Below are positions 11,892-62,951 of a stretch of 64,000 bases of DNA, piece by piece. The DNA lies in contig NC_043010.1 of NCBI RefSeq assembly GCF_006345805.1, positions 59,086,001-59,150,000 on the forward strand, in the 5' to 3' direction. The DNA is from Octopus sinensis (lineage: Eukaryota). Position numbers and translations under genes: made by a program. Position 1 is the first letter of the stretch; the number at the start of each line of letters is the position of its first letter. Under the pieces are notes generated by a model. It was not told where the DNA came from and did not search any database. It saw only the letters and a program-made list of their open reading frames with translations.

Positions 11892-14159
11892 ATGTTCCTG
11901 TCATTGTCTATTGTATTGTCGCTGGTCCAGTGTGTCCTGACCATAGACCTTACCTACCATGTGGAAGAAGAGAGAAGTCCAGGAACCTATGTAGCAGACA
12001 TTGCTGCCGATTCTAAACTTTTGGACAATGTTAAACCATCTGACCAACATTTGATAACATTCAGTCAATTCAAACGAAAGGTGGCACAGTTATTTAACAT
12101 CACCAAAACAGGTAAACTGTACACTGCTCAGACACTGGATGCAGAAGATCTCTGCACATTCAACAAAGAATGTTCCAGAACTATGAAAGTTATTATAAAG
12201 AAAGTGGATAGTTTCACAAAAATATTAAAAGTCAAAATAATCATAGAGGACATCAATGACCATCAACCAAAGTTTCCTATAAAGAATATCAACATACAGT
12301 TTTCTGAGAATATAGCTAAAGGTGCAAAACAATCAATACCCAATGCTATGGACAAAGATGTTGGATTTCAAAACTCATTAGCACAATATGAATTAAAATC
12401 AAAGAATGGAGAACCATTCTCTTTGTCAGTGTCTAAAAGAGTTGATGGTATTTCTTCACTTAAAATAGTTTTAAAAGAAACATTGGACAGAGAAATCAAA
12501 GATACATATTTATTACAGGTCATAGCTAAAGATGGAGGTTCACCAGCAAAACAAGGTATTTTAAATATAAATATTTCCATAATAGATGAGAATGACAACC
12601 CACCTGTATTTTCTAAACCTCTGTATAATGTATCCATACAAAGTACACATCATAAAGCCAAACCCATCATTGTTTTATCTGTGAGTGATGCTGATTCTGG
12701 TGAAAATGGTAAAATTACTTTCCATTTCAGTCCAAAAACATCAGATTTTGCAAAAAGCTATTTTGAAGTAAATGAAAACAGTGGAACTATTTTGTTAAGT
12801 AAATATACAAGTTTAGGAAAAAAGAAAACTTATGAACTGTTTATAGAGGCCAGAGATGGAGGCAACCCTCCCCTCAGTTCCATAGCAACAGTTCTTGTGA
12901 ATGTTATCAACCAACACAATAATCCTCCTTCTATTGATATTGATTATATTTCTGCAATCAATGACAACACAGCTACCATTTCTGAAAACATCAAAGTTGG
13001 TAGTTTCATTGCTTATGTGATGGTCACTGACAATGATGTGGGACAAAATGGAGAGGTCAGCTGTGATATCAAACATGATACATTCAAACTACAGTCAACG
13101 GGATCTAAAGAATATCAAATCATTCTAAACAAACCAGTGGACAGAGAAACACAAGGACACTATAACATTCCTGTCTCCTGTCAAGATAAAGGATTACCTC
13201 CTCTCAAAAGTGTTAAAAGCCTCTCTATCCAAGTGACTGACATCAACGATGTACAACCACAGTTTACCAAAGATACATTCCAATTCCTCACCTACGAAAA
13301 CAAAGATAAAGACTTCCCTATTGGTTTTGTCAATGCCACTGACCCTGATCTTGGATCTGCTGGACAACTCACATATTCTCTGCTGCGTAAAGAAAAATCC
13401 AATCTCCCATTTCTCATCACCAGTTATGGCTTCATTTCAGCGACCATGTCATTGGACAGAGAGAAACAAGATGTGTATAAGTTTGAGGTTTTTGTCAAAG
13501 ACAATGGAAGCCCATCTCTGAATGACACAGCGAATGTTGTTGTTGAGATTCTAGATCAAAATGACAATGCTCCGTATTTTACATATCCTAGTAGTGACCC
13601 TTACACGCTAAATGTGCAGTACCATCCGCAGAGTAAGAGTGACATCACAGTTTTGAGAGCGTCTGATGAGGACAGTGGAAACAATGCTTTCCTCAGATAT
13701 GCAATCATACAAGGAAATGATAAACAGTTGTTTAGTATGAACTCACACAGTGGTGCTTTATCCTTCTCCAGACAAGTTCATCTAAATGATGCTGGAAGTT
13801 ATGAGCTGGTGTTTGTTGTGAAGGACAGTGGTAGTCCAGTTCAGTCGTCAACAACTAGTGTCACTTTGGTATTGGCTGTTAGTAACGAGACATCACCAAT
13901 GTCGAAGAGTGGACCTTTACAATCTTCAGGTCAGGTCCATATGACATGGGTTATTATCATTGTATCATCAGCAGTAATAATATCAGTGGCTATTGTTGTT
14001 TCTATAAAACTGTGTATTATGCAATGTATTAAACACAGAGATAACACAGCTGCTGCCACAAAGAATACAGCCTACCAAGGTAGAGCAGAGATGAAACAAT
14101 TGTTGTACCAGACTAACACTTCTGTTGCTATGTCGAGAACTTTACCAAAACCTACCCCA
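11892..14159 (+). CDS. Pcdh: Protocadherin P1, large coding exon (signal peptide, EC1-EC6, TM, proximal tail; 36-aa tail deletion)
   Basis: 770-aa ORF 11892-14204 with cadherin motifs (LDAE/LDRE, DxNDN, DxD, DGG) and the protocadherin EC1 Cys-X5-Cys motif (CTFNKEC). Acceptor ttttag at 11834-35, donor CCA|GTAAGT at 14160. Spliced product 832 aa. Confidence 0.95.
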
Positions 14160-14330
14160 GTAAGTGGAAACATTACATTTTCTCTCTGTAAAAGTGAACA
14201 ATGAAATCTCTTTGAATATGTTTTAACTTCAATAATACATTCCAATATTAAATTGTTCTCTTTCCATGTTGATTGTAACTTCCATTGTTTGGTGTCTTCT
14301 CACATTTCTTTATCGTTTGTTTGTCAACAG

Positions 14331-14484
14331 AAATACTGTCAACCTGTTGTGGTGACATCAAGTGATGATGCTGTGGAAGATAATGCTACTATGGTTTGCA
14401 ACTATACATCAGATACAATGTCATCCAAGAGAAGTGGTAGACAAGGAGACTTGAAACATTACGAAGAAATACCAGGTGTATCAG
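14331..14484 (+). CDS. Pcdh: P1 cytoplasmic exon (KYCQPVVVT...EEIPGVS)
   Basis: caacag acceptor in phase 0 matches the upstream donor. 154 nt, phase-1 GT donor, present in all six copies. Confidence 0.85.
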
Positions 14485-14740
14485 GTACATTAGCAATATC
14501 TTATCTTGAAATCATCTGAAATTTGTTAGTAACTCTGTTAACAGATTTATAATTGTTTCTAAGAATAAATTAATTCATTTAAATACCAGATTCCTAGAAT
14601 ATTTTCTGTTTTTCCATAACAAGTATTAGAATTTATCTACATTATCATTTCATCTTGTTTCTGTTACTCGTTTCCTATTATTGTCTTTTATAAATATCCA
14701 AGAACGTCCGTTTGTAATACATGTTGTATTTCTTTTCCAG

Positions 14741-14817
14741 ATCAAAGTATTTATAAAAACAATGACACTTCTACAAGAAAGGAATCCACGGAAGAAACAC
14801 CAGTGAAGCATGTATAA
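14741..14817 (+). CDS. Pcdh: P1 terminal coding exon (DQSIYKNNDTSTRKESTEETPVKHV*)
   Basis: ttttccag acceptor, phase 1 keeps the frame open. The last codon varies synonymously between paralogs (GTA/GTT/GTC) before an invariant TAA. AATAAA at 14971. Confidence 0.8.
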
Positions 14818-16578
14818 TTATGTTTCTAAGAAGACATAATCGCAGTTCTTCATCTAAATATGAGATGTTGATATCCCAAACAATGTTAACATGTGCATTA
14901 TTATCTCTTATATATATATAATTAGTAAGTTTGAAAACGGAGAGATTCAAGGGATATAAATTAATTTATTAATAAAGTGCCTGCAACTATTTCACTGTAC
15001 ATCCAATTTAAATTACAAAGCATATACAAATATATTAGTTTGCATTTCAAGATATGTTGGGTGGAAAATCTTGAGGGCATTTTCATATCCTGAAGATTTT
15101 CCACCCAAGATATTTATATATATGCTTTGTAATTTAAATTGGATGTGAAACGAAACAATTGTAGGCAAAGATGTAATTAACTGATAAATTAATTTATGTC
15201 CATTGAATCTCTCCATTTTTAAACTTAATAATAATATTTGATATTTTATGATATATTCATTGAAGAAATATCTCTTCAAAATACCCTATATTAAACCAGT
15301 ATATCTTGGATAAAAATATATCTATCAAAGGTCTAAATATCCTCATAGTGAATATATATATGTCCATATGGAGACATATGAAATTTTGAAACATAGGAAT
15401 AATATAAACTTATTGAATAACTGTTTTGATCTAAGATTATCCTGCATACATTGTGCCACCCGTACTTTTAAGTATTTTAAATAATAGCATTCTGACTATT
15501 CCTAAAGTTTCAAATCTTAATGTTTTTTTTAACCAAATAAGGAAATAATATACCATACTAGCTTTTATTTAACCTGCATAGATTAAGAAATTTTATAATA
15601 TAAATAAATTGAATAAAGTGAAATAAAATCTTTTTAAACTTTCCTATATAGGATTGCATAAATTCCATATATCTAGTGAAATTTATTAAGTTCATCTTGA
15701 TTACCTCCCTTCCATTTTATAGGCTCTTGATATATGTGGCAAATGATAATTTTTTTTTTTACAGGTAATAAATAATATGTCTAGCATATTCCTTTAATTT
15801 AACTCATTGATACAAATAAATTACTATTTACTAACTAACTATAAGTCTATATTAATAATCTGATATATATATTTTTATAAATATGAAATCATTCCTATAT
15901 TCTCCATCCCTATATAAGATACTAAAATTTATTAGAATCCTTTGGAAAAAACTATCTTAGGAATATTTATTTAAAATCACAAGCAGGATTATGACTATTA
16001 AATAAGTTAAGGGCATTAGAAATCTCTAGGGCATTAGAAGTCTCTATTCTCTCTACCCCACTAGCTTCAGCCTACTAACTTTAGCAAATGCACCAAAGTT
16101 AAATTCCTCATAAAAGGGTTGGATTTATGGCTCTGCCATTTGAACTGCCCCTTCCTCTATCTATAAATAGAAAAATTCTTGATTGTCTCCACTGAACTTA
16201 ATAAAGAAAAAAAACCCTGCCCATTGGTAAATCTAAATAACAAAGTGAACTCAGTGATAAAAATCTGCCCATGAGGAAAGATCTTCTACTACCATGTTCT
16301 TACTGATGAAATTCACCTCTCGGTCTATATACCTACCCTCTTTGTAATGTTGGCAAATGGAATAAGTATAGAAAATGAACATTGTCAATATAATTAAAAA
16401 AATTCCATATGTGGCTGAAGAGTGCTCTACATTTTTAAAACTGATGTAATACTTACATTGTTTAATTAAATGAAGTAGCATGAAACGATTGTACTACACT
16501 ACCTTTGTATATCCTTGTTGCTTATTTTGATTATATATATATATGTATATATGTAAGTATATATATGTATATATGTAA

Positions 16579-16615
<37 letters not shown>

Positions 16616-16618
<3 letters not shown>

Positions 16619-17300
16619 TCATCATCATCATCATCATCATTTAGCGTCCGTTTTCCATGCTAGCATGGGTTGGACGGTTCTACTGGGGTCTGTGAAGCCA
16701 GAAGGCTTCATCAGGCCCAGTCAAATCTGGCAGTGTTTCTACGGCTGGATGTCCTTCCTAACGCCAACCACTCCGTGAGTGTAGTGGGTGCTTTTTACGT
16801 GCCACCCGCACTGGTGCCAGACAGAGCTGGCAAACGGCCACGAACGGATGGTGCTTTTTATGTGCCACCGGCACGAGGGCCAGGCGAGGCTGGCAACGGA
16901 CACGAAACGGGGCGGTGCTGGCAACGGTCGCGAAACGGAAAGTTCTCTTACATGCCACCGGCACTGGTAACACATCTGCAATTTCCATTGATCGATTTCG
17001 ATTCTGATCCTCACTTGCCTCAATGGGTCTTCACAAGCAGAGTTTCGACATGCCACCGGCACTGGTAACACATCTGCAATTTCCATTGATCGATTTTGAT
17101 TCTGATCCTCACTTGCCTCAACACGTCTTCACAAGTAGAGTTTTGTGTCCCAAGAAGGGAAGGTATGCATACGTAGGCTGGCTCCATCCCATGTAGAAGG
17201 CCACGGGTTGTGGACTCACTTGTCCTGCCGGGTCTTCTCGCGCACAGCACACTTCCAGAGGTCTCGGTCTCTAGTCATTTCCTCAGTGAGACCTAAAGTT
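16616..17300 (-). mobile_element. RTE-type LINE 3' end, tandem copy 1
   Basis: Minus strand begins with the ORF end LGLTEEMTRDRDLWKCAVREKTRQDK*, then a long 3' UTR and (GAT)n tail. Embedded in (TA)n. Confidence 0.8.
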
Positions 17301-17351
17301 ATATATATATATATATATTATATATATATATATATAATATATATATATATA

Positions 17352-18036
17352 TCATCATCATCATCATCATCATCATTTAGCGTCCGTTTTCCATGCTAGC
17401 ATGGGTTGGACGGTTCAACTGGGGTCTGTGAAGCCAGAAGGCTGCACCAGGCCCAGTCTGATCTGGCAATGTTTCTACGGCTGGATGCCCTTCCTAACGC
17501 CAACCACTCCGAGAGTGTAGTGGGTGCTTTTTACGTGCCACCCGCACTGGTGCCAGACAGAGCTGGCAAATGGCCACGAATGGATGGTGCTTTTTATGTG
17601 CCACCGGCACGAGGGCCAGGCGAGGCTGGCAACGGACACGAAACGGGGCGGTGCTGGCAACGGTCGCGAAGCGGAAAGTTCTCTTACATGCCACCGGCAC
17701 TGGTAACACATCTGCAATTTCCATTGATCGATTTCGATTCTGATCCTCACTTGCCTCAATGGGTCTTCACAAGCAGAGTTTCGACATGCCACCGGCACTG
17801 GTAACACATCTGCAATTTCCATTGATCGATTTTGATTCTGATCCTCACTTGCCTCAACACGTCTTCACAAGTAGAGTTTTGTGTCCCAAGAAGGGAAGGT
17901 ATGCATACGTAGGCTGGCTCCATCCCATGTAGAAGGCCACGGGTTGTGGACTCACTTGTCCTGCCGGGTCTTCTCGCGCACAGCACACTTCCAGAGGTCT
18001 CGGTCTCTAGTCATTTCCTCAGTGAGACCTAAAGTT
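17352..18036 (-). mobile_element. RTE-type LINE 3' end, tandem copy 2 (736-bp period)
   Basis: Near-identical to 16616-17300. ORF-track entries repeat at a 736-nt offset. Confidence 0.8.
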
Positions 18037-18471
18037 ATATATATATATATATATATATATATGGTGGATTCTCTCATCGAAGACGATGAATGAGGGTTCA
18101 ACAATTCCTAAGCCTTGTGACACCGCATGTGTACTTATATATATATATATAAAGTTTCTGTTAATATGTTTAGTTTTTCTGAGGGCTAGAAATATACAAC
18201 ATTTGCTCATTGTGTAAAGAGGGCTTATTTTAAATGCTACAATATTATCAACAGGAATAAACGATCAGCAGACATATTTTGGGGCTGGTTTACTTCCATT
18301 TCTTTATGTTGTGTGTTCAACTCTCACTGAGGTAGAACTTTTCCTGTCATCCACTGAGGTTTATAATATAATTACCTGTTAAGTACAGGTGTTGAGGATG
18401 TTTGTCTCTTTTCCAAGATGTGACCTCACAACTGTATTAGAAATCTTTCTGGCATTACCGTGTAAATGTAC

Positions 18472-19020: not shown

Positions 19021-19050
19021 ATTGGTCGTCTGGTAAGTCATTCAACCAAT
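19021..19050 (+). promoter_or_regulatory. Paired inverted CCAAT boxes, putative P2 promoter
   Basis: ATTGG 19021-25 and CCAAT 19046-50, identical to the P1 element. Confidence 0.6.
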
Positions 19051-19745: not shown

Positions 19746-21730
19746 ATAATAATAATAATAATAATAATAATTGTGTACAGTGCTCAGGTGCACTACAACT
19801 CATCTAAAGTGTATATATAATCAGGTGTAGTTTCGGCGGATTTCGGAAAGCATGAGGGCCTTAAAAGATGCAGTGTCATGGCAGTCAACAACTGACGCAG
19901 GCAGTTTATTCCATGCTTCAGCAACTCTGAGCGTGAAAAAATGTTTCCGAAAGTCATGGGAGCTGTATTGTTTTCTGACTTTGTAGGCATGTCCACGTGT
20001 GTTAGACACATGGAGATCAAAAAGGTGTTCAGTGTTGTTGTTGGTGAGGTGGTTGATAACTTTGTGGGTGTTTACCAAGTCCGTCGCCAAACGCCGGAGC
20101 TTCAGTGAATCCATGCCCAGGGAAACAAGGCGCTCAGAATATGGTAGGTGTCTGATGGAGGGTATGCGTTTGGTTGCACGTCTCTGGACAGATTCCAGGA
20201 GGTCAATGTTCTGTGCAAGATAGGGGTTCCAAACTGATGATGCGAATTCCAAGTGTGGTCGTACCATAGCTGTATACAGTTTTAAATAGATGGCTGGAGA
20301 GCGGCTAACAAAAGACCTGCTGAGTGATGCCAAGACACCCTCGGCCTTCCTGACAATCTTAGAGATATGCTTTGACCAACGCAAATCACTGCTGACAGTG
20401 ATGCCTAGGTCACGCTCGCAAGAGGATTTCTTGATATCAGTGTTGTGGAGGGAGTAAGTGAACGCAGGGTTTTTTCTCCCAAAATGCATGGTGGTACACT
20501 TGTCCACAGCCAGTTTCAGTTGCCAGTCTGTGATCCATTGCTGCATTGTGTCTAGGTCTGATTGCAGGAAAGAGTTGTAGACATCAGGATCTGTCCTCTT
20601 GATTTCAAGGTACAGCTTGATGTCGTCTGCATATTTCAATACTGTGGCATTCTTTAAATTGGCATCTATGTCGTTAATGTATGCCACAAACAAGAGGGGA
20701 CCAAGGACAGATCCCTGTGGTACACCCGATGACATCTCATATGGTGTAGAGTGCTGTCCTAGAACTGTGACTACCTCCTTTCGGCTGAGGATGAAGGATT
20801 TCAACCAGTTAAAAAGGTCATCCCCCACACCCATTGCAGAGAGTTTCACCATAAGCCTTTTGTGTGGCACAGAGTTGAAAGCCTTAGCAAAGTCAAGGTA
20901 GACAACATCCACCCATGAGCCACTGTCAGTAATCTGAGTAATGTCCTCAAGGAACTCGACAAGCTGGTCACTGCAGCTGGAGTTAGGGACAAATCCATAT
21001 TGTGAGGGTCGGATGAGACTGTGAGAGCTCCAGAAGTTCCAGAGTGTTTCTCTGACAGACGATTCCATCAGTTTTGCAATACAGCTAGTGAGACTGACTG
21101 GGCGATAGTTGACAGGTGATGTGCGGTCGCCCTTTTTGAACAGAGGAATGACACTGGCAGTTTTCCACTGCTCCGGAGTAGCACCATTGTTGAGACAGTA
21201 CTGGAAGAAAATAGAAAGCTGGTGTAAAAGGAAGTGCCTGCCACGTTTGAGAAGCAGGTATGTAACTCCATCGAGACCAGGGGAGGCATAGTTGCGCTTA
21301 TTTTGAAGGTGACGTCGCAGCATTGCAGGTGTAAATTCCATAGTTGTTATGGAGTTTGCTGTTAGTGATGGTGAAGATGGTACATTTTGACTTTCAACAG
21401 TGAATATGTTTGCATAGTACTCGGCAATGAGTTCTGCGCATTCCTTGGGGTCGTCAGTGATCTGGTTTGTGTGAGGGTTGCGAAGAGGGCCCACTGGAGA
21501 GTGAGGTCTCTGCTTTGAGTGCACATATTTCCAGAAAACCTTGCTGTCAGGATTGGCTGCTATGCACTGTTCAAATTCAAGCACTGCTTTTTTTGTCACT
21601 TGCTTGAGATGGTTGGAGGATTTATTCCGCTTCTTCCTGTTGGTGTCTGATTTATGCAACCTGTATTCCCGTTCAGCAGTCCGACGTTCCCTCCTGGCAA
21701 GTCGGACCGCTGAAGTTTCCCAAATTGCCC
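19746..21730 (-). mobile_element. CR1-like LINE, 5'-truncated, reverse transcriptase frame intact
   Basis: ORF 19821-21659 (612 aa) has YRPVSLTS, DFAKAF, GVPQGSVLGP, YADD and RATKRIP, with an (ATT)n tail at 19746-19771. It is inserted where similarity to the P1 leader intron ends. Confidence 0.92.
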
Positions 21731-21735
21731 TTTTG

Positions 21736-22763: not shown

Positions 22764-23463
22764 AATTGTTGCAGTTTTTTTGTTGTTGAAACTTCGTAAT
22801 GGCTGCTCTTCTCTAATAGGTTAAGATTTGCTGTATCTGCCAATGGCACTTGAGCAGATTTTTAAGCAGTGCTGCTGCTTCTGCTCAACCATATTTGAAG
22901 GGTTAAACTAAAGTTTGATCCTACGCAGGGGAACAATTACAACAAACAATGAGGAAACAGTTTTCCAGTTTTCTAATCACTTTGTTTCCACCTTAGTGGT
23001 CAGTTCAGTCCTTAGTTGAAGGATTCTGGTGGAGCTTTTGAGTTGTAACTGGACCTGGATGGCTTTATGTCGCTTGAAAGTGTTCCATCTAGAACCAGAT
23101 AGCCCAAGCAATTTCAGTTAGATCCAATTGCAGGGTTTCACATTCAAACTCACCAACTGAATTCCCTTAAGTAAAATTTCTATAATTAAGTTATTTAATC
23201 CCAGTCTTGACTCCAGTACTATTTCTTGGACAACATGGCTATTATTATTGTCTTCAAATGTGTAAAAACATTGAAACTTAAATCATTGGATTGGGCTTTT
23301 ATTCTATAGAAGTACAGTTGCAAAATGATAGTAATGCATTTCTAATACTTTACTAATTATCGTATACTTAAACTGTGACATGTTTTTGATTATAATTAAC
23401 CAAGTAAATATATTTGTTTTAGGGTCAATCTGAAACAAACCTGGACAGCTTCACCTCAACACA

Positions 23464-25839
23464 ATGTTATTGTCATTGTCCATTGTATTATCAATGGTCC
23501 ACTGTGTCCTGACCATAGACCTTACCTACCATGTGGAAGAAGAGAGAAGTCCAGGAACCTATGTAGCAGACATTGCTGCCGATTCTAAACTTTTAGACAA
23601 TGTTAAACCATCTGACCAACATTTGATAACATTCAGTCAATTCAAACGAAAGGTGGCACAGTTATTTAATATCACCAAAACAGGTAAGCTGTACACTGCT
23701 CAGACACTGGATGCAGAAGATCTCTGCACATTCAACAAAGAATGTTCTAGAACTATGAAGGTTGTTGTCAATAAAGGAATCAGTGTTTCAAAAATATTAA
23801 AAATCAAAATTGTTATAGAAGATATCAATGACCATCAACCAGAGTTTCCTATAAAGAATGTGAATATACAGTTTGGAGAAGATGACCGTATCAGTTCAAA
23901 AAGATCAATACCGAATGCCATGGACAAAGATGTTGGATTTCAAAACTCCTTAATTCAATATAAATTAAAATCAAAGAATGGAGAACCATTCTCTCTGTCA
24001 GTGTCTAAAAGAGCTGATGGTATTTCTTCACTTAAAATAGTTTTAAAAGAATCATTAGACAGAGAAATCAAAGATACATATTTATTACAAGTCATAGCTA
24101 AAGATGGAGGTTCACCAGCAAAACAAGGTATTTTGAATATAAATATCTCAATAATAGATTTAAACGACAACCCACCTGTATTTTCTAAACCTTTATATAA
24201 TATATCCATACAAAGTACACATCATAAATCCAAACCCATCATTGTTTTATCTGTAACAGATGCTGATTCTGGTGAAAATGGCAAAATTACTTTCCATTTC
24301 AGTCCAAAGACATCAGATCTAGCAAAAAGCTATTTTCAGTTAAATAAAACCAGTGGAAATATTCTGTTGAGGGAATATTCAAATCTGGGAAAAAAGAAAA
24401 CCTATGAATTATTTGTAGAAGCCAGAGACGGAGGTATTCCACCTCTCAATTCCATAGCAACTGTTCTGGTAAATGTTATCAATCAACACAACAATCCCCC
24501 AAATATTGATATTGATTATGTTTCTGCAATCAATGACAACACAGCTACCATCTCTGAAAACATCAAAGTCGGTAGTTTCATTGCTTATGTGATGGTCACT
24601 GACAATGATGTGGGACAAAATGGAGAGGTCAGCTGTGATATCAAACATGATACATTCAAACTACAGTCAATGGGATCTAAAGAATATAAAATCATTCTAA
24701 ACAAACCAGTGGACAGAGAAACACAAGGACACTATAACATTCCTGTCTCCTGTCAAGATAAAGGATTACCTCCTCTCAAAAGTGTTAAAAGCCTCTCTAT
24801 CCAAGTGACTGACATCAACGATGTACAACCACAGTTTACCAAAGACACATTCCAATTCCTCACCTACGAAAACAAAGATAAAGACTTCCCTATTGGTTTT
24901 GTCAATGCCACTGACCCTGATCTTGGATCTGCTGGACAACTCACGTATTCTCTGCTGCGTAAAGAAAAATCCAATCTCCCATTTCTCATCACCAGTTATG
25001 GCTTCATTTCAGCGACCATGTCATTGGACAGAGAGAAACAAGATGTGTATAAGTTTGAGGTTTTTGTCAAAGACAATGGAAGCCCATCTCTGAATGACAC
25101 AGCGAATGTTGTTGTTGAGATTCTAGATCAAAATGACAATGCTCCGTATTTTACATATCCTAGTAGTGACCCTTACACGCTAAATGTGCAGTACCATCCG
25201 CAGAGTAAGAGTGACATCACAGTTTTGAGAGCTTCTGATGGGGACAGTGGAAACAATGCTTTCCTCAGATATGCAATCATACAAGGAAATGATAAACAGT
25301 TGTTTAGTATGAACTCACACAGTGGTGCTTTATCCTTCTCCAGACAAGTTTATCTAAATGATGCTGGAAGTTATGAGCTGGTGTTTGTTGTGAAGGACAG
25401 TGGTAGTCCAGTTCAGTCGTCAACAACTAGTGTCACTTTGGTATTGGCTGTTAGTAACGAGACATCACCAATGTCGAAGAGTGGACCTTTACAATCTTCA
25501 GGTCGGGTCCATATGACATGGGTTATTATCATTGTATCATCAGCAGTAATAATATCAGTGGCTATTGTTGTTTCTATAACGCTGTGTATTATGAAATGTA
25601 TTAAACACAGAGATAACACAGCTGCTGCCACAAAGAATACAGCCTACCAAGGTAGAGCAGAGATGAAACAATTGTTGTACCAGACTAACACTTCTGTTGC
25701 TATGTCGAGGAATGCAGAAGAGATGGTGAAGCGGAATATCTATTCTGAGAGATCCAAGAGTGAATGTTATGCAGAAGGTCAGCTACAGAACAAATATGAA
25801 TCTTCAGTTCAGTCGAGAACTTTACCAAAACCTACCCCA
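23464..25839 (+). CDS. Pcdh: Protocadherin P2, large coding exon
   Basis: 806-aa ORF 23464-25884 with six cadherin repeats and a TM. Acceptor at 23421-22, donor at 25840. Confidence 0.95.
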
Positions 25840-26010
25840 GTAAGTGGAAACATTACATTTTCTCTCTGTAAAAGTGAACAATGAAATCTCTTTGAATATG
25901 TTTTAACTTCAATAATACATTCCAATATTAAATTGTTCTCTCTCCATGTTGATTGTAACTTCCATTGTTTGGTGTCTTCTCACATTTCTTTATCGTTTGT
26001 TTGTCAACAG

Positions 26011-26164
26011 AAATACTGTCAACCTGTTGTGGTGACATCAAGTGATGATGCTGTGGAAGATAATGCTACTATGGTTTGTAACTATACATCAGATACAATG
26101 TCATCCAAGAGAAGTGGTAGACATGGAGAGTTGAAACATTACGAAGAAATACCAGGAATATCAG
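26011..26164 (+). CDS. Pcdh: P2 cytoplasmic exon
   Basis: AG/GT bounded, 154 nt, frame-compatible. Confidence 0.85.
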
Positions 26165-26711: not shown

Positions 26712-26788
26712 ATCAAAGTATATATAAAAACAATGATACATCTACATCAAAAGAATCCAGTGAAGAGACACCAGTGAAACATGTTTAA
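26712..26788 (+). CDS. Pcdh: P2 terminal coding exon (DQSIYKNNDTSTSKESSEETPVKHV*)
   Basis: tttcag acceptor, GTT TAA end, AATAAA at 26944. Confidence 0.8.
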
Positions 26789-27596: not shown

Positions 27597-27646
<50 letters not shown>

Positions 27647-27692
27647 TAGTAATTATCATCTTTAAGGGTAAATACATACAGAATATTATTAG

Positions 27693-34365: not shown

Positions 34366-34602
34366 ACCAGTTGTTGTTGTTCTTTACTTCTATGGATGCA
34401 TTGAGACATAAACACTTTAATCTATCAAATGAATTGCTGTAAAATACTACAGCCATACATTTCTAATGTTTCCATGGTTAATTGTATCGTTTGAATTGTA
34501 ACTTATTTCTTATAACATTTGTTCAAGGAAACATATTTCCATTTCAGGTTCAACCAATGCCACACCTTCAGATACCTAACCATTCCAACACTCAACAGCA
34601 AC

Positions 34603-36978
34603 ATGTTCCTGCCATTGTCTATTGTATTTTCGCTGGTCCAGTGTGTCCTGACCATAGACCTTACCTACCACGTGGAAGAAGAGAGAAGTCCAGGAACATA
34701 TGTAGCAGACATTGCTGCCGATTCTAAACTTTTAGACAATGTTAAACCATCTGACCAACATTTGATAACATTCAGTCAATTCAAACGAAAGGTGGCACAG
34801 TTATTTAACATCACCAAAACAGGTAAACTGTACACTGCTCAGACACTGGATGCAGAAGATCTCTGCACATTCAACAAAGAATGTTCCAGAACTGTGAAAG
34901 TTGTGGTTAATAAAGGAAGAAGTATTACAAAGATATTAAAAATCAAAATTGTAATAGAAGATATCAATGACCATCAACCAAACTTTCCTATGAGAAATGT
35001 CAATATACTGTTTAGTGAAGATGATCGCAAAGGTGCAAAAAGATCAATACCCAATGCCATAGACAAAGATGTTGGATTTCAAAACTCATTAATACAATAT
35101 AAATTAAAATCAAAGAATGGAGAACCATTCTCTCTGTCAGTGTCTAAAAGAGCTGATGGTATTTCTTCTCTTAAAATAGTTTTAAAAGAAACATTGGACA
35201 GAGAAATCAAAGATACATATTTATTACAGGTCATAGCTAAAGATGGAGGGTCACCAGCAAAACAAGGGATTTTGAATATAAATATTTCTGTAATAGATGT
35301 TAATGACAACCCACCAGAGTTTTCTAAACCTTTATATAATATATCCATACAAAGTGCGCATCACAAATCTAAACCCATCATTGTTTTATCTGTGACAGAT
35401 GCTGATTCTGGTGAAAATGGTAAAATTACTTTCCATTTCAGTCCAAAGACATCAGATATAGCAAAAAGTTATTTTCAATTAAATGAAACCAGTGGAAATA
35501 TTCAGTTAAGGGAATATTCAAATTTTGGGAAAAAGAAAACCTATGAACTATTTATAGAAGCCAGAGATGGGGGCAACCCTCCTCTCATTTCTATAGCAAC
35601 AGTTCTGGTAAATGTTATCAACCAACACAACAATCCTCCATCTATTGATATTGATTATGTTTCTTCAATCAATGACAACACAGCTACCCTTTCGGAAGAC
35701 ACCAGAGTTGGTAGTTTCATTGCTTATGTGATGGTCACTGACAATGATGTGGGACAAAATGGAGAGGTCAGCTGTGATATCAAACATGATACATTCAAAC
35801 TACAGTCAATGGGATCCAAGGAATATAAAATCATTCTAAACAAACCAGTGGACAGAGAAACACAAGGACACTATAACATTCCTGTCTCGTGTCAAGATAA
35901 AGGATTACCTCCTCTGAAAAGTGTTAAAAGCCTCTCTATCCAAGTGACTGACATCAACGATGTACAACCACAGTTTACCAAAGATACATTCCAATTCCTC
36001 ACCTACGAAAACAAAGATAAAGACTTCCCTATTGGTTTTGTCAATGCCACTGACCCTGATCTTGGATCTGCTGGACAACTCACATATTCTCTGCTGCGTA
36101 AAGAAAAATCCAATCTCCCATTTCTCATCACCAGTTATGGCTTCATTTCAGCGACCATGTCATTGGACAGAGAGAAACAAGATGTGTATAAGTTTGAGGT
36201 TTTTGTCAAAGACAATGGAAGCCCATCTCTGAATGACACAGCGAATGTTGTTGTTGAGATTCTAGATCAAAATGACAATGCTCCGTATTTTACATATCCT
36301 AGTAGTGACCCTTACACGCTAAATGTGCAGTACCATCCGCAGAGTAAGAGTGACATCACAGTTTTGAGAGCCTCTGATGGGGACAGTGGAAACAATGCTT
36401 TCCTCAGATATGCAATCATACAAGGAAATGATAAACAGTTGTTTAGTATGAACTCACACAGTGGTGCTTTATCCTTCTCCAGACAAGTTTATCTAAATGA
36501 TGCTGGAAGTTATGGGCTGGTGTTTGTTGTGAAGGACAGTGGTAGTCCAGTTCAGTCGTCAACAACTAGTGTCACTTTGGTATTGGCTGTTAGTAACGAG
36601 ACATCACCAATGTCGAAGAGTGGACCTTTACAATCTTCAGGTCGGGTCCATATGACATGGGTTATTATCATTGTATCATCAGCAGTAATAATATCAGTGG
36701 CTATTGTTGTTTCTATAACGCTGTGTATTATGAAATGTATTAAACACAGAGATAACACAGCTGCTGCCACAAAGAATACAGCCTACCAAGGTAGAGCAGA
36801 GATGAAACAATTGTTGTACCAGACTAACACTTCTGTTGCTATGTCGAGGAATGCAGAAGAGATGGTGAAGCGGAATATCTATTCTGAGAGATCCAAGAGT
36901 GAATGTTATGCAGAAGGTCAGCTACAGAACAAATATGAATCTTCAGTTCAGTCGAGAACTTTACCAAAACCTACCCCA
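34603..36978 (+). CDS. Pcdh: Protocadherin P3, large coding exon
   Basis: The ORF track starts at 34519, but the homologous ATG is 34603, after the acceptor at 34546-47. Donor at 36979. Confidence 0.95.
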
Positions 36979-37149
36979 GTAAGTGGAAACATTACATTTT
37001 CTCTCTGTAAAAGTGAACAATGAAATCTCTTTGAATATGTTTTAACTTCAATAATACATTCCAATATTAAATTGTTCTCTTTCCATGTTGATTGTAACTT
37101 CCATTGTTTGGTGTCTTCTCACATTTCTTTATCGTTTGTTTGTCAACAG

Positions 37150-37302
37150 AAATACTGTCAACCTGTTGTGGTGACATCAAGTGATGATGCTGTGGAAGAT
37201 AATGCTACTATGGTTTGTAACTATACATCAGATACAATGTCATCCAAGAGAAGTGGTAGACAAGGAGACTGAAACATTACGAAGAAATACCAGGAGTATC
37301 AG
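37150..37302 (+). CDS. Pcdh: P3 cytoplasmic exon with a 1-nt deletion creating TGA at 37270-37272
   Basis: GGAGACTGAAAC versus GGAGACTTGAAAC in all other copies. Exon is 153 nt. Confidence 0.75.
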
Positions 37303-38594: not shown

Positions 38595-38671
38595 ATCAAA
38601 ATATATATAAAAACAATGATAATTCTACATCAAAAGATTCCAGTGAAGAAACACCAGTGAAACATGTATAA
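38595..38671 (+). CDS. Pcdh: P3 terminal exon (DQNIYKNNDNSTSKDSSEETPVKHV*), translated only if the upstream deletion is an error
   Basis: tttcag acceptor, frame intact, AATAAA at 38883. Confidence 0.7.
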
Positions 38672-43300: not shown

Positions 43301-45485
43301 TCTTTTGATCATCGGTCGTGTTATTCTTTGCTCTGCGCTGAAAGATTGTTTTTGTGCTGAAAATTGTGAAAATTTACTGTTTTGGTCGTCGAAACCACTT
43401 CTTTTCTGCTGTTGCAGCAGAGTTTTTCCCGTTCTTTCCCCCTTGAAGCGGCAAAAAAACATGAATTTGCCACCAATTTCTTCCGAGTCGGAGAAAAACT
43501 TTGAAAATTTGTTTGAAGGCGATGAAGGCGAAAATGTGGGAGGAGGAAGGTGAAAGTATAGAGGCGTCTCGCGCGCGCGTTACAAAAGCAGACGACAAGA
43601 TGTCGAGCGAGGCTACGACACAAGAGGAAAAGTCAAAAATACATTTTGTGAGTGCAGCAACTCGCCCCTGCGAAAATATAGTTATTAACAAGGAAGAATT
43701 AAAGAAATACCAAGGTTTACTAAAGAAAGAAGGTGATAATTTGAAGTTGCTCCCTCCCAGTGAATTAATTTACGCGACGGAGAGAAAAACTGTGATATAC
43801 AAAACATATAATGTGAAAAATAGGAAAATTGACTTCGTGCCGAGGGAAGCCATAGGAAAATTCTTGAGGCCGATATGGCAACAAACAAGTTATATAACAA
43901 GGGGTTGTCGCTTCGGCACTGTAGAGGTGCGTTACCCTAGCGAAGAAAAAGCTAGGGAACATCCAACAAGGACATTGAAGTCTGAAGAAGTGGTTCTCCT
44001 GCCGACTTCAAAAATCACAGTCGCGGATATACCACCCGGAATAGATGTGGCCTGGGTGATAGCCGCTATTCTCATAGCAAAGAAGAAGAAATTTCAATTC
44101 TTTAATCTAAGAGATACCACCACATGAACTGGTTTGGACAAGATTTAGAGCTTGTCATCCAAGCAAATCCCTCAGACTTAGAAAAATTGCCCAGTTCCCT
44201 TACATAAGGTCGAGCTGTAAGAAGAAGACAGCCAAAGAAAACGCAGCAGAAGAGGCAAGGACGCCGCCGAAGACAACGACCACACCACTAGAAATAGCAG
44301 CCACGTCGCGCACCCCAATTGCCGAAGTACAGCCGACAGCGGGAGAAAACAACAACAACATCCAGGAGTGGGTCAACGTGGAACCTTCAAAAAGAAGACG
44401 GAAACGGAAAAACCCACCCTCTTCGGATACACAGGACTATGCTCCGAGACAGACAAGCACACCCACACCCACACATACAGTCACAAACACACACGTAGCC
44501 AAAAAAACACACACACTGGAAAAAGCACACACAAACACACACACACACACCTACAAACACCCATGCTTTTACAAGCACACACACACACACCCCTCCACAA
44601 TCGCCTAATATAAAAAAGAGAAACACCTTCACGGCGATAAACAAAATAATAAACTATTAAGAGACAAAATTGTTTCAATGAAATTGGCGAAAAAATATAT
44701 CGCAATAGATGTAAATAATACTATTCTTGAAAATGTCGAATTTTATACCAAAGACAACTATTTTGAACTAAAAAAATCTTTTGTGGAGGATGTCGGCCTG
44801 TTACAGATGAACTTTTCAAGCCATCTGTCCAGGCAATTCGCGAAAAAAATGACTTCGCAAACCACAACACTCACAGACAGAAAAGAGGAGGGTGAAACTA
44901 CACCCTCTCTCCCATTAAAACAGTAAGTTTTAAACATTCGACTTATTTTTCACATTCTCATTTAAACTCGGTTGTTTAAATATTTGCGGCCTGGGGTCGT
45001 ATTGGAAGCAAGGCTACCTCCTTAACAACCTTGGGTCGCATCGTTTGGATGTAGTTGTAATTACCGAATCCAGACTGAGTGGGCTGCAGGCTTTTTCGCC
45101 CCTTCTAAACGGCTACGAGAAATACGTTTCTCCCTGTCGACCAGGAGTGGCAGTGCTGGTCAGAAAAAACCTGGATTTAGAGATTAGAACTGTCTTTATA
45201 GATCCAGAAGGCAGGTTGGTCGTTTTGGATGTGACGCACAGCAGTGGTAAAGTGTTCAGGCTGGTTGCTGTCTGTGCTCCCTGCAAAGGAAAAGATTACT
45301 TCAAACAGTGAAAGGAATTGCAACAGGCGTGTTTATCTCCACTCTCGAGCTAATCGACTTTTTCGTTTTCCACATGAAACGGAAAATAAGGCTGGAGAAG
45401 AAATGCCTGTCGCAAAGTGTGTTTCGTAAAAGATGGAAGTATGTTGCGAGTGAAAAAACCTCTTTAATCGAGAATGTAAAAAAGG
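43292..45485 (+). mobile_element. L1/Tx1-like LINE: decayed ORF1 and start of ORF2 endonuclease, internally deleted
   Basis: From 44961: FKLGCLNICGLG...LDVVVITESRL...GVAVLV...DPEGRLVVLDV...FRLVAVCAP, an L1/Tx1-type APE N-terminus. ORF1-like 43501-44127. No RT domain follows. Boundaries are approximate. Confidence 0.7.
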
Positions 45486-48545: not shown

Positions 48546-48801
48546 AGCGCCTCTTTTCTCAATTTCCTCACTTAAACATTTCTATATAGAATACAAAAAG
48601 AAAAAAGGCTTAGTTCCAAGTTCTCTATTATGATAATTGTTCCTATATATTTTCATAAGATAATCTTAATCTTTGGAGACAATATACTTATGTACATTTT
48701 GTGTGTTGAAATCAAACAATAATAACTAATGTATTTTTGTTTTAGGTTAATTCTTCAACAAATCAGAACATTTTTAACCAGTTCCAACACTCAACAGCAA
48801 C

Positions 48802-51177
48802 ATGTTACTGTCGTTGTCTATTGTATTGTCAGTGGTCCACTGTGTCCTGACCATAGACCTTACCTACCATGTGGAAGAAGAGAGAAGTCCAGGAACATAT
48901 GTAGCAGACATTGCTGCCGATTCTAAACTTTTAGACAATGTTAAACCATCTGACCAACATTTGATAACATTCAGTCAATTCAAACGAAAGGTGGCACAGT
49001 TATTTAACATCACCAAAACAGGTAAACTGTACACTGCTCAGACACTGGATGCAGAAGATCTCTGCACATTCAACAAAGAATGTTCTAGAACTATGAAAGT
49101 TGTTGTCAATAAAGGAAGAAGTATTACAAAGATATTAAAAATCAAAATTGTAATAGAAGATATCAATGACCATGAACCTAAGTTTCCAAAAACTATAGTG
49201 TATATAGAATTTGGAGAAAATGATCGTAAAGGTTCTAAAGTATCACTACCGAATGCCATAGACAAAGATGTTGGATTTCAAAATTCATTAATTCAATATA
49301 AATTAAAATCAAAGAATGGAGAACCATTCTCTCTGTCAGTGTCTAAAAGAGCTGATGGAATTTCTTCTCTTAAAATAGTCTTAAAAGAATCATTGGACAG
49401 AGAAATCAAAGATACATATTTATTACAGGTCATAGCTAAAGATGGAGGGTCACCAGCAAAACAAGGTATTTTAAATATAAATATCTCAATAATAGATTTG
49501 AACGACAACCCACCTGTATTTTCTAAACCTTTATATAATATATCCTTACAAAGTACACATCATAAATCCAAACCCATCATTGTTTTATCTGTGACAGATG
49601 CTGATTCTGGGGAAAATGGTAAAATTACTTTCCATTTCAGTCCAAAGACATCAGATATAGCAAAAAGCTATTTTCAATTAAATGAAACCAGTGGAGGCAT
49701 TTTGTTAAGTAAATATTCAAGTTTGGGGAAAAAGAAAACCTACGAATTGTTTATAGAAGCCAGAGATGGGGGCAGCCCTCCCCTCAGTTCTATAGCTACA
49801 GTCCTCGTAAATGTTATCAATCAACACAATAATCCTCCATCTATTGATATTGATTATGTTTCTTCAGTCAATGACAACACAGCTACCATTTCTGAAGATA
49901 CCAGAGTTGGTAGTTTCATTGCTTATGTGATGGTCACTGACAATGATGTGGGACAAAATGGAGAGGTCAGCTGTGATATCAAACATGATACGTTCAAACT
50001 ACAGTCAATGGGATCTAAAGAATATAAAATCATTCTAAACAAACCAGTGGACAGAGAAACACAAGGACACTATAACATTCCTGTCTCCTGTCAAGATAAA
50101 GGATTACCTCCTCTTAAAAGTGTTAAAAGCCTCTCTATCCAAGTGACTGACATCAACGATGTACAACCACAGTTTACCAAAGATACATTCCAATTCCTCA
50201 CCTACGAAAACAAAGATAAAGACTTCCCTATTGGTTTTGTCAATGCCACTGACCCTGATCTTGGATCTGCTGGACAACTCACATATTCTCTGCTGCGTAA
50301 AGAAAAATCCAATCTCCCATTTCTCATCACCAGTTATGGCTTCATTTCAGCGACCATGTCATTGGACAGAGAGAAACAAGATGTGTATAAGTTTGAGGTT
50401 TTTGTCAAAGACAATGGAAGCCCATCTCTGAATGACACAGCGAATGTTGTTGTTGAGATTCTAGATCAAAATGACAATGCTCCGTATTTTACATATCCTA
50501 GTAGTGACCCTTACACGCTAAATGTGCAGTACCATCCGCAGAGTAAGAGTGACATCACAGTTTTGAGAGCGTCTGATGGGGACAGTGGAAACAATGCTTT
50601 CCTCAGATATGCAATCATACAAGGAAATGATAAACAGTTGTTTAGTATGAACTCACACAGTGGTGCTTTATCCTTCTCCAGACAAGTTTATCTAAATGAT
50701 GCTGGAAGTTATGAGCTGGTGTTTGTTGTGAAGGACAGTGGTAGTCCAGTTCAGTCGTCAACAACTAGTGTCACTTTGGTGTTGGCTGTTAGTAACGAGA
50801 CATCACCAATGTCGAAGAGTGGACCTTTACAATCTTCAGGTCGGGTCCATATGACATGGGTTATTATCATTGTATCATCAGCAGTAATAATATCAGTGGC
50901 TATTGTTGTTTCTATAACGCTGTGTATTATGAAATGTATTAAACACAGAGATAACACAGCTGCTGCCACAAAGAATACAGCCTACCAAGGTAGAGCAGAG
51001 ATGAAACAATTGTTGTACCAGACTAACACTTCTGTTGCTATGTCGAGGAATGCAGAAGAGATGGTGAAGCGGAATATCTATTCTGAGAGATCCAAGAGTG
51101 AATGTTATGCAGAAGGTCAGCTACAGAACAAATATGAATCTTCAGTTCAGTCGAGAACTTTACCAAAACCTACCCCA
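48802..51177 (+). CDS. Pcdh: Protocadherin P4, large coding exon
   Basis: 806-aa ORF 48802-51222. Acceptor at 48744-45, donor at 51178. Confidence 0.95.
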
Positions 51178-51348
51178 GTAAGTGGAAACATTACATTTTC
51201 TCTCTGTAAAAGTGAACAATGAAATCTCTTTGAATATGTTTTAACTTCAATAATACATTCCAATATTAAATTGTTCTCTATCCATGTTGATTGTAACTTC
51301 CATTGTTTGGTGTCTTCTCACATTTCTTTATCGTTTGTTTGTCAACAG

Positions 51349-51502
51349 AAATACTGTCAACCTGTTGTGGTGACATCAAGTGATGATGCTGTGGAAGATA
51401 ATGCTACTATGGTTTGTAACTATACATCAGATACAATGTCATCCAAGAGAAGTGGTAGACAAGGAGACTTGAAACATTATGAAGAAATACCAGGAGTATC
51501 AG
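51349..51502 (+). CDS. Pcdh: P4 cytoplasmic exon
   Basis: AG/GT bounded, 154 nt. Confidence 0.85.
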
Positions 51503-51954: not shown

Positions 51955-52031
51955 ATCAAAGTTTATATAAAAACAATGATGCATCTACATCGAAAGATTC
52001 CAGTGAAGAAACACCAGTGAAACATGTCTAA
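51955..52031 (+). CDS. Pcdh: P4 terminal coding exon (DQSLYKNNDASTSKDSSEETPVKHV*)
   Basis: ttccag acceptor, GTC TAA end. Confidence 0.8.
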
Positions 52032-60207: not shown

Positions 60208-60240
60208 ACATATATATATATATTTATATATATATATATC

Positions 60241-60273
<33 letters not shown>

Positions 60274-60405
60274 AGACAGATAGATCGATGTTTTAATTAT
60301 ATGTCAATATTAAACAGTATTGTAACTAATGACATGCATTTCTATTTTAGGTTCAGTCTACACATACCTTGATATATTTAACCACTACCAACATACAACA
60401 GCAAT

Positions 60406-62780
60406 ATGTTACTGTCATTGTCCATTGTATTATCAATGGTCCAGTGTGTGCTGACCATAGACCTTACCTACCACGTGGAAGAAGAGAGAAGTCCAGGAAC
60501 ATATGTAGCAGACATTGCTGCCGATTCTAAACTTTTAGACAACGTTAAACCATCTGACCAACATTTGATAACATTCAGTCAATTCAAACGAAAGGTGGCA
60601 CAGTTATTTAACATCACCAAAACAGGTAAACTGTACACTGCTCAGACACTGGATGCAGAAGATCTCTGCACATTCAACAAAGAATGTTCCAGAACTATGA
60701 AAGTTGTTGTCAATAAAGGAACCAGTGTTTCAAAAATATTAAAAATCAAAATAGTAATAGAAGATATCAATGACCATGAACCTAAATTTCCAAAAAATAC
60801 AGTTTATTTAGAATATGGTGAAGATGATCGTAAAGGTGCTAAAAGATCGTTACCAAATGCCATAGACAAAGATGTTGGATTTCAAAATTCATTAATTCAA
60901 TATAAATTAAAATCAAAGAATGGAGAACCATTCTCTCTGTCAGTGTCTAAAAGAGCTGATGGTATTTCTTCACTTAATATAGTTTTGAAAGAATCATTAG
61001 ACAGAGAAATCAAAGATACATATTTATTACAAGTCACAGCTAAAGATGGAGGTTCACCAGCAAAACAAGGAATTTTGAATATAAATATCTCTATAATGGA
61101 TGTAAATGACAACCTACCAGAGTTTTCTAAACCTCTGTACAATATATCCATACAAAGTACGCATCATAAATCCAAACCCATCATTGTTTTATCTGTAACA
61201 GATGCTGATGCTGGTGAAAATGGTAAAATTACTTTCCATTTCAGTCCAAAGACATCAGATATTGTAAAAAGCTATTTTCAGTTGAATGAAACCAGTGGAA
61301 GCATTTTATTAAGAAAATATTCAAGTCTGGGAAAAAAGAAAACCTATGAATTGTTTATAGAAGCCAGAGATGGGGGCAGTCCACCCTTTAGTTCTATAGC
61401 AACTGTTTTAGTAAATGTTGTCAACCAACACAACAATCCCCCAAATATTGATATTGATTATGTTTCTGCAATCAATGACAACACAGCTACCATCTCTGAA
61501 AACATTAAAGTTGGTAGTTTCATTGCTTATGTGATGGTCACTGACAATGATGTGGGACAAAATGGAGAGGTCAGCTGTGATATCAAACATGATACATTCA
61601 AACTACAGTCAATGGGATCTAAAGAATATAAAATCATTCTAAACAAACCAGTGGACAGAGAAACACAAGGACACTATAACATTCCTGTCTCCTGTCAAGA
61701 TAAAGGATTACCTCCTCTGAAAAGTGTTAAAAGCCTCTCTATCCAAGTGACTGACATCAACGATGTACAACCGCAGTTTACCAAAGATACATTCCAATTC
61801 CTCACCTACGAAAACAAAGATAAAGACTTCCCTATTGGTTTTGTCAATGCCACTGACCCTGATCTTGGATCTGCTGGACAACTCACATATTCTCTGCTGC
61901 GTAAAGAAAAATCCAATCTCCCATTTCTCATCACCAGTTATGGCTTCATTTCAGCGACCATGTCATTGGACAGAGAGAAACAAGATGTGTATAAGTTTGA
62001 GGTTTTTGTCAAAGACAATGGAAGCCCATCTCTGAATGACACAGCGAATGTTGTTGTTGAGATTCTAGATCAAAATGACAATGCTCCATATTTTACATAT
62101 CCTAGTAGTGACCCTTACACGCTAAATGTGCAGTACCATCCGCAGAGTAAGAGTGACATCACAGTTTTGAGAGCTTCTGATGGGGACAGTGGAAACAATG
62201 CTTTCCTCAGATATGCAATCATACAAGGAAATGATAAACAGTTGTTAGTATGAACTCACACAGTGGTGCTTTATCCTTCTCCAGACAAGTTTATCTAAAT
62301 GATGCTGGAAGTTATGAGCTGGTGTTTGTTGTGAAGGACAGTGGTAGTCCAGTTCAGTCGTCAACAACTAGTGTCACTTTGGTATTGGCTGTTAGTAACG
62401 AGACATCACCAATGTCGAAGAGTGGACCTTTACAATCTTCAGGTCGGGTCCATATGACATGGGTTATTATCATTGTATCATCAGCAGTAATAATATCAGT
62501 GGCTATTGTTGTTTCTATAACGCTGTGTATTATGAAATGTATTAAACACAGAGATAACACAGCTGCTGCCACAAAGAATACAGCCTACCAAGGTAGAGCA
62601 GAGATGAAACAATTGTTATACCAGACTAACACTTCTGTTGCTATGTCGAGGAATGCAGAAGAGATGGTGAAGCGGAATATCTATTCTGAGAGATCCAAGA
62701 GTGAATGTTATGCAGAAGGTCAGCTACAGAACAAATATGAATCTTCAGTTCAGTCGAGAACTTTACCAAAACCTACCCCA
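60406..62780 (+). CDS. Pcdh: Protocadherin P5, large exon with a 1-nt deletion in EC6 (~62245): pseudogene or sequencing error
   Basis: ORFs 60406-62253 and 62250-62825 join at CAGTTGTTAGT, versus CAGTTGTTTAGT in paralogs. Acceptor at 60349-50, donor at 62781. Confidence 0.9.
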
Positions 62781-62951
62781 GTAAGTGGAAACATTACATT
62801 TTCTCTCTGTAAAAGTGAACAATGAAATCTCTTTGAATATGTTTTAACTTCAATAATACATTCCAATATTAAATTGTTCTCTTTCCATGTTGATTGTAAC
62901 TTCCATTGTTTGGTGTCTTCTCACATTTCTTTATCGTTTGTTTGTCAACAG

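Follow-up and report, generated by a model that had tools for sequence, protein, structure and literature searches.

The stretch analysed here, referred to as the window, comprises 64,000 nucleotides (nt) of Octopus sinensis DNA (contig NC_043010.1, positions 59,086,001 to 59,150,000 of the forward strand) and contains part of a head-to-tail array of protocadherin genes. The window is AT-rich, with a guanine and cytosine (GC) content of ~36%, and carries five long open reading frames (ORFs) of 770-806 amino acids (aa) on the plus strand, plus one split ORF. The plus-strand paralogs, termed P1-P5, have ORF starts at 11892, 23464, 34603, 48802 and 60406. A first-pass annotation of this DNA counted these five copies, to which a sixth, truncated copy at 655-1343 (P0) has to be added. 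In the encoded ectodomains of P1-P5, a variable block is enclosed by two nearly invariant ones, and the constancy of the latter is mainly the result of concerted evolution by recurrent interlocus gene conversion, not of differing protein constraint.

The encoded proteins are protocadherins by composition, with an N-terminal Cadherin_2 repeat, tandem cadherin repeats and one transmembrane (TM) helix, the last recognised as the hydrophobic stretch WVIIIVSSAVIISVAIVVSITLCIM. Pfam searches identified PF08266 Cadherin_2 (E = 2e-11) and five copies of PF00028 (E = 2e-72), and linker motifs of the extracellular cadherin (EC) repeats are found at aa 120-128, 232-240, 450-458 and 555-563. The EC3-EC4 linker (aa 338-346; P2 24475-24501) reads NQHNNPP in place of the usual DxNDNxP calcium-binding motif, a form kept across the wider octopod protocadherin family (alignment consensus), and judged by this motif the linker may be calcium-poor. 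Database searches placed models annotated as 'protocadherin beta-like' from O. vulgaris and O. sinensis first (96% identity), followed by proteins of Argonauta hians (79-87%). An AlphaFold model of EC1-4 reached a mean predicted local distance difference test (pLDDT) score of 85, and the top 42 Foldseek matches in the PDB were all protocadherin EC1-4/5/6 structures (E 1e-43 to 1e-38), the closest being EC1-4 of delta-2 and clustered protocadherins.

The tail described in the first-pass annotation was incomplete, as each gene has two further coding exons. Annotated proteins are ~62 aa longer than the window ORFs and diverge from them after TLPKPTP, and since a GTAAGT donor directly follows TLPKPTP in all five genes, the ORF ends represent intron read-through. 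A small exon of ~154 nt lies 171 nt 3' of the large exon, and a last coding exon of ~77 nt follows 170-1290 nt beyond the small exon. Each of the five genes has its own copy of both, and the P0 relic has its own small exon. Using tblastn with the annotated C-terminus, a separate copy was recovered behind each gene, ruling out shared constant exons. At the 5' side, a conserved polypyrimidine-AG, the putative 3' splice site, lies 41-56 nt before each ATG (11835, 23422, 34547, 48745 and 60350), and paralog similarity begins there. Judging from this splice-site motif, an upstream non-coding exon probably precedes the large coding one, and as homology among the copies starts at the putative splice site, the promoters would lie elsewhere. 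Only 25 nt separate the ATG of the O. vulgaris P1 ortholog from the end of a gene model annotated upstream of it (locus L001, 1-9976), which hints at read-through or fusion transcripts. The features of the array are as follows.

655-1343, plus strand: P0, truncated relic (blastn to P2, tblastn)
11836-14159, plus strand: P1 large exon; putative 3' splice site 11835, ATG 11892, GTAAGT donor after 14159
11943-12182, 12183-12995 and from 12996, plus strand: P1 EC1 constant, variable and second constant block
14331-14817, plus strand: P1 3' part (tblastn match to the O. vulgaris C-terminus as annotated, splice contexts); small exon 14331-14484, last coding exon 14741-14817, with a unique intron 2 between them
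23423-25839, plus strand: P2 large exon; ATG 23464, signal peptide 23464-23514
23515-23754, 23755-24567 and 24568-25839, plus strand: P2 EC1 constant, variable and second constant block; hot spot aa 124-148 at 23833-23907
25840-26164, plus strand: P2 intron 1 (171 nt) and small exon, the 3' end of the homogenised tract
26712-26788, plus strand: P2 last coding exon, not homogenised
34548-37302, plus strand: P3 large exon, intron 1 and small exon; ATG 34603, donor after 36978, variable block 34894-35706
38595-38671, plus strand: P3 last coding exon
48746-51502, plus strand: P4 large exon, intron 1 and small exon; ATG 48802, donor after 51177, variable block 49093-49905
51955-52031, plus strand: P4 last coding exon
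60351-63105, plus strand: P5 large exon, intron 1 and small exon; ATG 60406, donor after 62780, variable block 60697-61509
63285-63361, plus strand: P5 last coding exon

Four of the copies depart from the common form. The P0 relic joins an EC4/EC5 fragment (655-793) to a cytoplasmic end (791-1018), followed by intron 1 and the small exon; it has lost everything upstream of late EC4 and carries a 690-nt internal deletion covering EC5-TM, and it matches P2 in blastn at 97.8% over 139 nt and 99.3% over 555 nt. Frames are broken in P5, by a 1-nt deletion (TTT to TT) at position 1840 of the large exon (~62245), across which the P5 protein had been read, and in P3, by a 1-nt deletion within a short T run of the small exon near 37269. 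The cytoplasmic part of P1 lacks 108 nt (36 aa) in frame at 14137/14138, corresponding to P2 25710-25817 and flanked by GTCGAG(R)A direct repeats; the O. vulgaris P1 ortholog (P0129; CAI9733517) has the same deletion, which is therefore real and predates the species split.

The distribution of diversity was determined by counting variable sites in a nucleotide alignment of the large coding exon from the five window paralogs. In codons 18-97 (nt 52-291), only 7 of 240 sites vary (2.9%), all synonymously, so the five proteins are identical here, as had been noted. Across codons 98-368 (nt 292-1104), variable sites number 179 of 813 (22%), and from codon 369 to the donor (nt 1105-2376) there are 30, eight of which are alignment noise at the P1 deletion, leaving ~22 of 1272 (<2%). 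The block edges are sharp to a few codons, with nine variable sites in nt 1087-1107 and the next at nt 1191. Between P2 and P4, differences affect 46 of 174 synonymous sites of the variable block but just 7 of 277 of the constant one, far more of a contrast than chance would give (Fisher p = 1.6e-14). The confinement of diversity to codons 98-368 claimed by the first-pass annotation thus holds for the mature ectodomain; the signal peptide (nt 1-51) is variable as well, at 10 of 51 sites (20%). Valine 369 indeed lies at nt 24568 in P2, and from this codon on P4 and P5 equal P2, P3 differs by E638G, and P1 has exactly seven substitutions, given earlier as about seven, in addition to the 36-aa deletion. 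According to the linker motifs and the AlphaFold secondary structure, aa 98-368 take in the EC1 beta6-beta7 hairpin, EC2 and EC3 in full, and EC4 as far as its first strand and loop, in agreement with the earlier description of a block running from the EC1 end to the EC4 start.

The cause of this constancy is visible at sites where the protein has no say. Nonsynonymous (dN) and synonymous (dS) divergence was estimated by the Nei-Gojobori method, and for the variable block of the window paralogs this gave a dS of 0.28-0.46 (~0.35) and a dN of 0.05-0.10, compared to a dS of ~0.026 and a dN of ~0 in the constant block; in the EC1 core, dS is 0.02-0.125 (~0.07) and dN 0. As dS drops tenfold at synonymous sites, protein constraint cannot be the cause. 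Intron 1 has a single variable site in an alignment of six copies. Octopus and Argonauta versions of this intron can for the most part not be aligned, which shows that it is free to change and under no constraint. Homology among the copies stops exactly at the donor of the small exon; beyond it, intergenic DNA, intron 2 and the last coding exon (85-93% aa identity among copies) are unrelated or diverged, showing that the duplicates are old. The intergenic DNA spans 8-12 kb and is unrelated among units save for transposon fragments. The P0 relic is incapable of encoding an adhesion protein, yet its identity to the live copies remains 98-99%, with intron 1 and the small exon counted in. The homogenised tract thus takes in synonymous sites, non-coding DNA and a non-functional copy, as concerted evolution predicts.

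Comparison with Argonauta provides the complementary evidence. In the constant block, protein identity reaches 99.3% among Octopus copies and 99.2% among those of Argonauta versus 89.6% between the genera, with fixed genus-specific differences common to all paralogs. Calculated on DNA of 10 genes from Octopus and 7 from Argonauta, constant-block dS is 0.032 (Octopus) and 0.048 (Argonauta) versus 0.304 between genera; paralogs of one species thus resemble each other more closely here than orthologous regions of different species do. Variable-block dS is 0.39 and 0.98 within the two genera and 0.89 between them. In neighbour-joining (NJ) trees, the variable block resolves into three clades, each containing both genera, whereas the constant block yields strict genus clades. 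The EC1 tree follows a third course, EC1 being common to clades A and B within a genus, with clade C keeping its own EC1. Taken as a whole, these patterns are diagnostic of concerted evolution through interlocus conversion, which affects two tracts, each with its own set of genes taking part. Homogenisation by gene conversion, cited in the first-pass annotation for the membrane-proximal repeats of vertebrates, is demonstrated directly here by dS, intron 1, the P0 relic and the species-specific constant blocks.

At the protein level, selection is purifying throughout when judged by region. The dN/dS ratio is 0.15-0.30 (~0.2) in the variable block and, between genera, ~0.17-0.20 in the constant block and ~0.04 in the EC1 core. 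Within the variable block, five of the six patches singled out in the first-pass annotation have ratios of 0.16-0.35 and the sixth (aa 347-368) 0.73, while the rest of the block has 0.07; as dS is saturated in the hot spot (aa 124-148), the ratio there is unreliable. Positive selection was not detected at the level of regions, 20-codon windows or the six patches, where dN/dS never exceeded 1. The confinement of diversity reflects where conversion acts and not faster protein evolution, because the variable block has the dN/dS that the constant block shows when genera are compared; the variable block retains older divergence and is not changing faster per unit of neutral change.

The variable block is not beyond the reach of conversion. 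It is converted less often and only in short tracts, leaving a mosaic of old patches. Patch types re-assort among ~20 paralogs; for example, P1 and the O. sinensis paralog P0132 are identical at aa 124-148 and different at aa 98-117. Conversion between paralogs, which had been proposed for testing, was detected as Sawyer-type identical runs in several pairs (p = 0.0015-0.03), and when the five genes of the window are analysed together, the four-gamete test is failed by 54% of informative site pairs and the pairwise homoplasy index (PHI) test gives p = 0.003. The P1 orthologs differ at 36 sites, 15 of them within the 146 nt of nt 406-551, indicating that a tract of ~150 nt was acquired since the two species split. 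Together, these runs, the PHI result and the P1-ortholog cluster show that short conversions do enter the block, and the conflicting segment trees and detectable tracts are again those of concerted evolution.

Variability peaks at aa 125-147, where as many as seven different residues occur at a single site; this stretch comprises the end of the EC1-EC2 linker and EC2 beta1, loop and beta2. At aa 124-148, five of eight O. sinensis and four of eight O. vulgaris proteins are closer to an Argonauta protein than to any paralog of the same species; at aa 149-283, none of eight has its best match in Argonauta. The hot-spot variants '...LKFSETDGKGTKQ' and '...FGENDRKGSKVS' are present in both genera. 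Hot-spot DNA identity is 0.79-0.83 across genera versus 0.61-0.78 to paralogs of the same genus, and the flanking codons 154-228 have 0.94-0.97 DNA identity within Octopus. The N-terminus of EC2 (aa 124-148) is thus the oldest patch, with variants predating the Octopus/Argonauta split. Isoform-specific conservation may thus exist at aa 124-148, where variants are kept across genera; elsewhere in the block conversion blurs orthology. The long persistence of a diverged 75-nt island between converted flanks suggests selection against its conversion.

The variable sites can be placed on the AlphaFold model, where sites 104-108 fall in the EC1 beta6-beta7 hairpin, 355-358 in the loop after EC4 beta1a, 286-292 in the helical Phe279-X11-Phe291 loop of EC3, and 138-147 in the EC2 beta1-beta2 loop and beta2. 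In vertebrate protocadherins, the EC4 loop after beta1a touches the EC1 beta6-beta7 loop and the EC3 Phe-X10-Phe loop packs against EC2 beta2b, with EC1/EC4 providing non-selective affinity and EC2/EC3 specificity (Nicoludis et al., PMC5001838). By position and homology, three variable islands fall on elements that are in mutual contact in vertebrate trans dimers, which is consistent with a specificity module; a recognition code in aa 98-368 is a reasonable inference. No binding data for any octopus protocadherin were found in the searched literature.

Taken together, the array is best explained, and we hold this with considerable confidence, as an old head-to-tail array with two converted tracts and selectively protected patches. 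Interlocus conversion keeps the EC1 core (codons 18-97) near-identical within a species and homogenises everything from codon 369 at the EC4 start through EC5-EC6, the TM helix, the cytoplasmic part, intron 1 and the small exon. Conversions erasing patch differences would be removed by selection, since binding specificity would reside in the patches, within an antiparallel EC1-4 trans dimer resembling those formed by delta and clustered protocadherins of vertebrates. Common affinity, cis-assembly and signalling parts would be supplied by the homogenised EC1, EC4-EC6, TM and tail, such that conversion would do the job of the shared constant exons in vertebrates. It could further be speculated that long-lived, region-specific conversion in octopods substitutes for constant exons by preserving a single EC1/EC4-to-tail chassis, while selected interface islands are shuffled by short tracts into new adhesion-code combinations; this extension is tentative, and we put it somewhat below an even chance. 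If true, it would represent a second, mechanistically different evolutionary route to protocadherin self-recognition, operating across dozens of separately transcribed genes.

Several observations weigh against this explanation. No region or patch has a dN/dS above 1, and the equality of variable-block and between-genera constant-block ratios gives no sign of faster or adaptive protein change, a result that, on the first-pass annotation's own reckoning, speaks against a recognition code, dN/dS being well below 1 in the block and in five patches and 0.73 at aa 347-368. High dS and high dN coincide along the block (high at aa 101-160, 221-260 and 281-340; low at aa 161-220, 261-280 and 341-380), and escape from conversion in the absence of selection would give the same picture. 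The PHI test is not significant for seven genes (p = 0.11), the mapping to the interface relies on homology at 26-32% identity and secondary-structure position and not on a dimer model, and the frameshifts in P3 and P5 may mark dying copies or sequencing or consensus errors. The first two of these points are also what would be expected if conversion operated without selection for diversity, with segments that have by chance diverged past an identity threshold escaping it and the patches carrying no recognition code. The constant block, too, is patchy between genera, with aa 496-510 and 601-615 at ~66% identity. Yet, aa 124-148 stays diverged although both its flanks are homogenised within Octopus (94-97% nucleotide identity for aa 149-228), and particular variants of the hot spot have survived in Octopus as well as in Argonauta. 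Moreover, the islands match elements touching in vertebrate trans dimers, and the entry of short tracts means that conversion is not mechanically excluded from the block. We therefore consider conversion without selection unlikely, though with an appreciable residual probability.

A young array with fast adaptive change between the EC1 end and the EC4 start is, on the other hand, highly improbable. It would account for the dense non-synonymous patches and for whole-gene distances that look young, as in the octopod protocadherin burst dated to 8-14 million years ago (Ma) from Jukes-Cantor distances (PMC9795677). However, variable-block dS is more than ten times the constant-block dS, dN/dS is ~0.2, variable-block lineages and hot-spot variants also occur in Argonauta, and the copies are unrelated or have diverged in their intergenic DNA, second intron and last exon; recent duplication is ruled out by dS, the trees and the unrelated intergenic DNA. 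As ~60% of each gene is homogenised, distances, trees and dates from whole genes look too young and too species-specific, and the 8-14 Ma burst may partly be an effect of conversion. Likewise, neither short reads mapped to the constant tracts nor probes designed there can distinguish the paralogs. Even less credence can be given to collapsed or cross-polished repeats in the assembly. The single-base deletions of P5 and P3 in short T runs hint at some consensus errors, and O. bimaculoides offers only a partial member on a 6-kb contig; nevertheless, independent assemblies for O. vulgaris (GCA_951406725.2), O. sinensis (GCA_006345805.1) and Argonauta hians (GCA_054771915.1) have the same layout, each genus with constant sequences of its own, every window copy keeps private singleton differences in its constant tract, and tract edges match splice sites and codon 97/98, not read-length scales. 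The other assemblies and the private singletons of each copy rule out such an artefact.

The surroundings of the genes add some observations on the recent history of the locus. Window positions 2095-16616 are colinear with O. vulgaris chromosome OX597827.1 (97.9%), and a clear ortholog exists for P1 only. No ortholog of P2-P4 was found among 15 listed cluster members and in three Octopus loci, the nearest of the listed proteins differing at 24 aa or more, and no colinear match of P2-P4 to the O. sinensis locus L005 was found. Downstream of P1, the array differs in structure from that of O. vulgaris (16555-18062 versus L001 14745-14775), the window having an extra 736-nt tandem duplication and a long interspersed nuclear element (LINE), and the 5' end of the next O. 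vulgaris gene (L001 19410-19700) is 98% identical to the 5' end of window P1 (11676-11966), not to that of P2, which suggests unequal exchange or conversion downstream of P1 since the split from O. vulgaris. Two LINE-type ORFs with RVT_1 (Pfam) lie between protocadherin genes on the minus strand, one at 3672-5765, also with an endonuclease domain, and one at 19821-21659, which is absent from the colinear O. vulgaris locus and represents a recent insertion or a lineage-specific difference. Between P3 and P4, GC content rises at 42-48 kb, and a 208-aa ORF without a Pfam match located there (43501-44127, plus strand) is probably transposon-derived.

The window array is one of the cephalopod protocadherin expansions (Albertin 2015 and 2022; Styfhals 2019). 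These expansions have been described as lineage-specific whole-gene duplications without shared constant exons (PMC9068888), and gene conversion has been raised as a possible cause of similarity in cephalopod protocadherin papers, including PMC9068888, at a general or whole-gene level only. In the searched literature, no domain-resolved description of conversion, no intron or pseudogene evidence and no Octopus-Argonauta test was found for cephalopod protocadherins. For these large families, the present analysis offers a residue-level hypothesis of cell identity that centres on ~270 residues, ~25 in particular, and shows that gene conversion is by itself able to maintain a 'variable head, constant body' design in genes that share no exons.

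The closest solved structures, 6vg1, 6vfr and 6vft (E ~1e-43), belong to the delta-2 protocadherins (Pcdh8, 10, 17, 18 and 19), which form antiparallel EC1-4 dimers (PMC5001838). Unlike the octopus genes, these are single-copy vertebrate genes with no isoform array and no concerted evolution. Insect Dscam1 resembles the octopus array in that numerous isoforms are built on a constant scaffold and are distinguished by a few segments of the ectodomain; its diversity arises by mutually exclusive splicing of exon cassettes within one gene, whereas that of the octopus involves whole genes and conversion.

The nearest parallel in layout is offered by the vertebrate clustered protocadherins, especially alpha, which are likewise tandem paralogs with six cadherin repeats, near-identical in EC1 and EC5-EC6 among isoforms and most diverse in EC2-EC3. 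Among mouse alpha isoforms, identity is 96% in EC1, 69% in EC2, 59% in EC3, 85% in EC4 and 98% in EC5 (PMC4978886). As summarised in that paper, Noonan et al. 2004 found dS of vertebrate clustered genes to be lowest membrane-proximally and highest in EC2/EC3, a pattern interpreted as conversion sparing EC2-EC3. A layout shaped by region-limited conversion is thus already known from vertebrates, and the octopus array is a further example. As to the proposal that the same layout evolved independently, the octopus layout matches that of vertebrate alpha, and an independent origin agrees with PMC9068888, which regards the expansions as independent, and with the own 3' exons of each gene, so that a convergent layout is supported. 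Sequence identity between octopus and vertebrate protocadherins is only 26-32%, and the differences in gene organisation are considerable. In a vertebrate-type locus, each variable exon has its own promoter and conserved sequence element and is chosen stochastically. Variable exons there are spliced to a single shared set of constant exons, an arrangement not found in the window, where each octopus gene has its own TM helix, cytoplasmic part and two 3' exons. Unlike in the vertebrate clusters, the octopus tail is kept constant by conversion alone, the homogenised tract includes an intron, and the large coding exon is apparently preceded by one.

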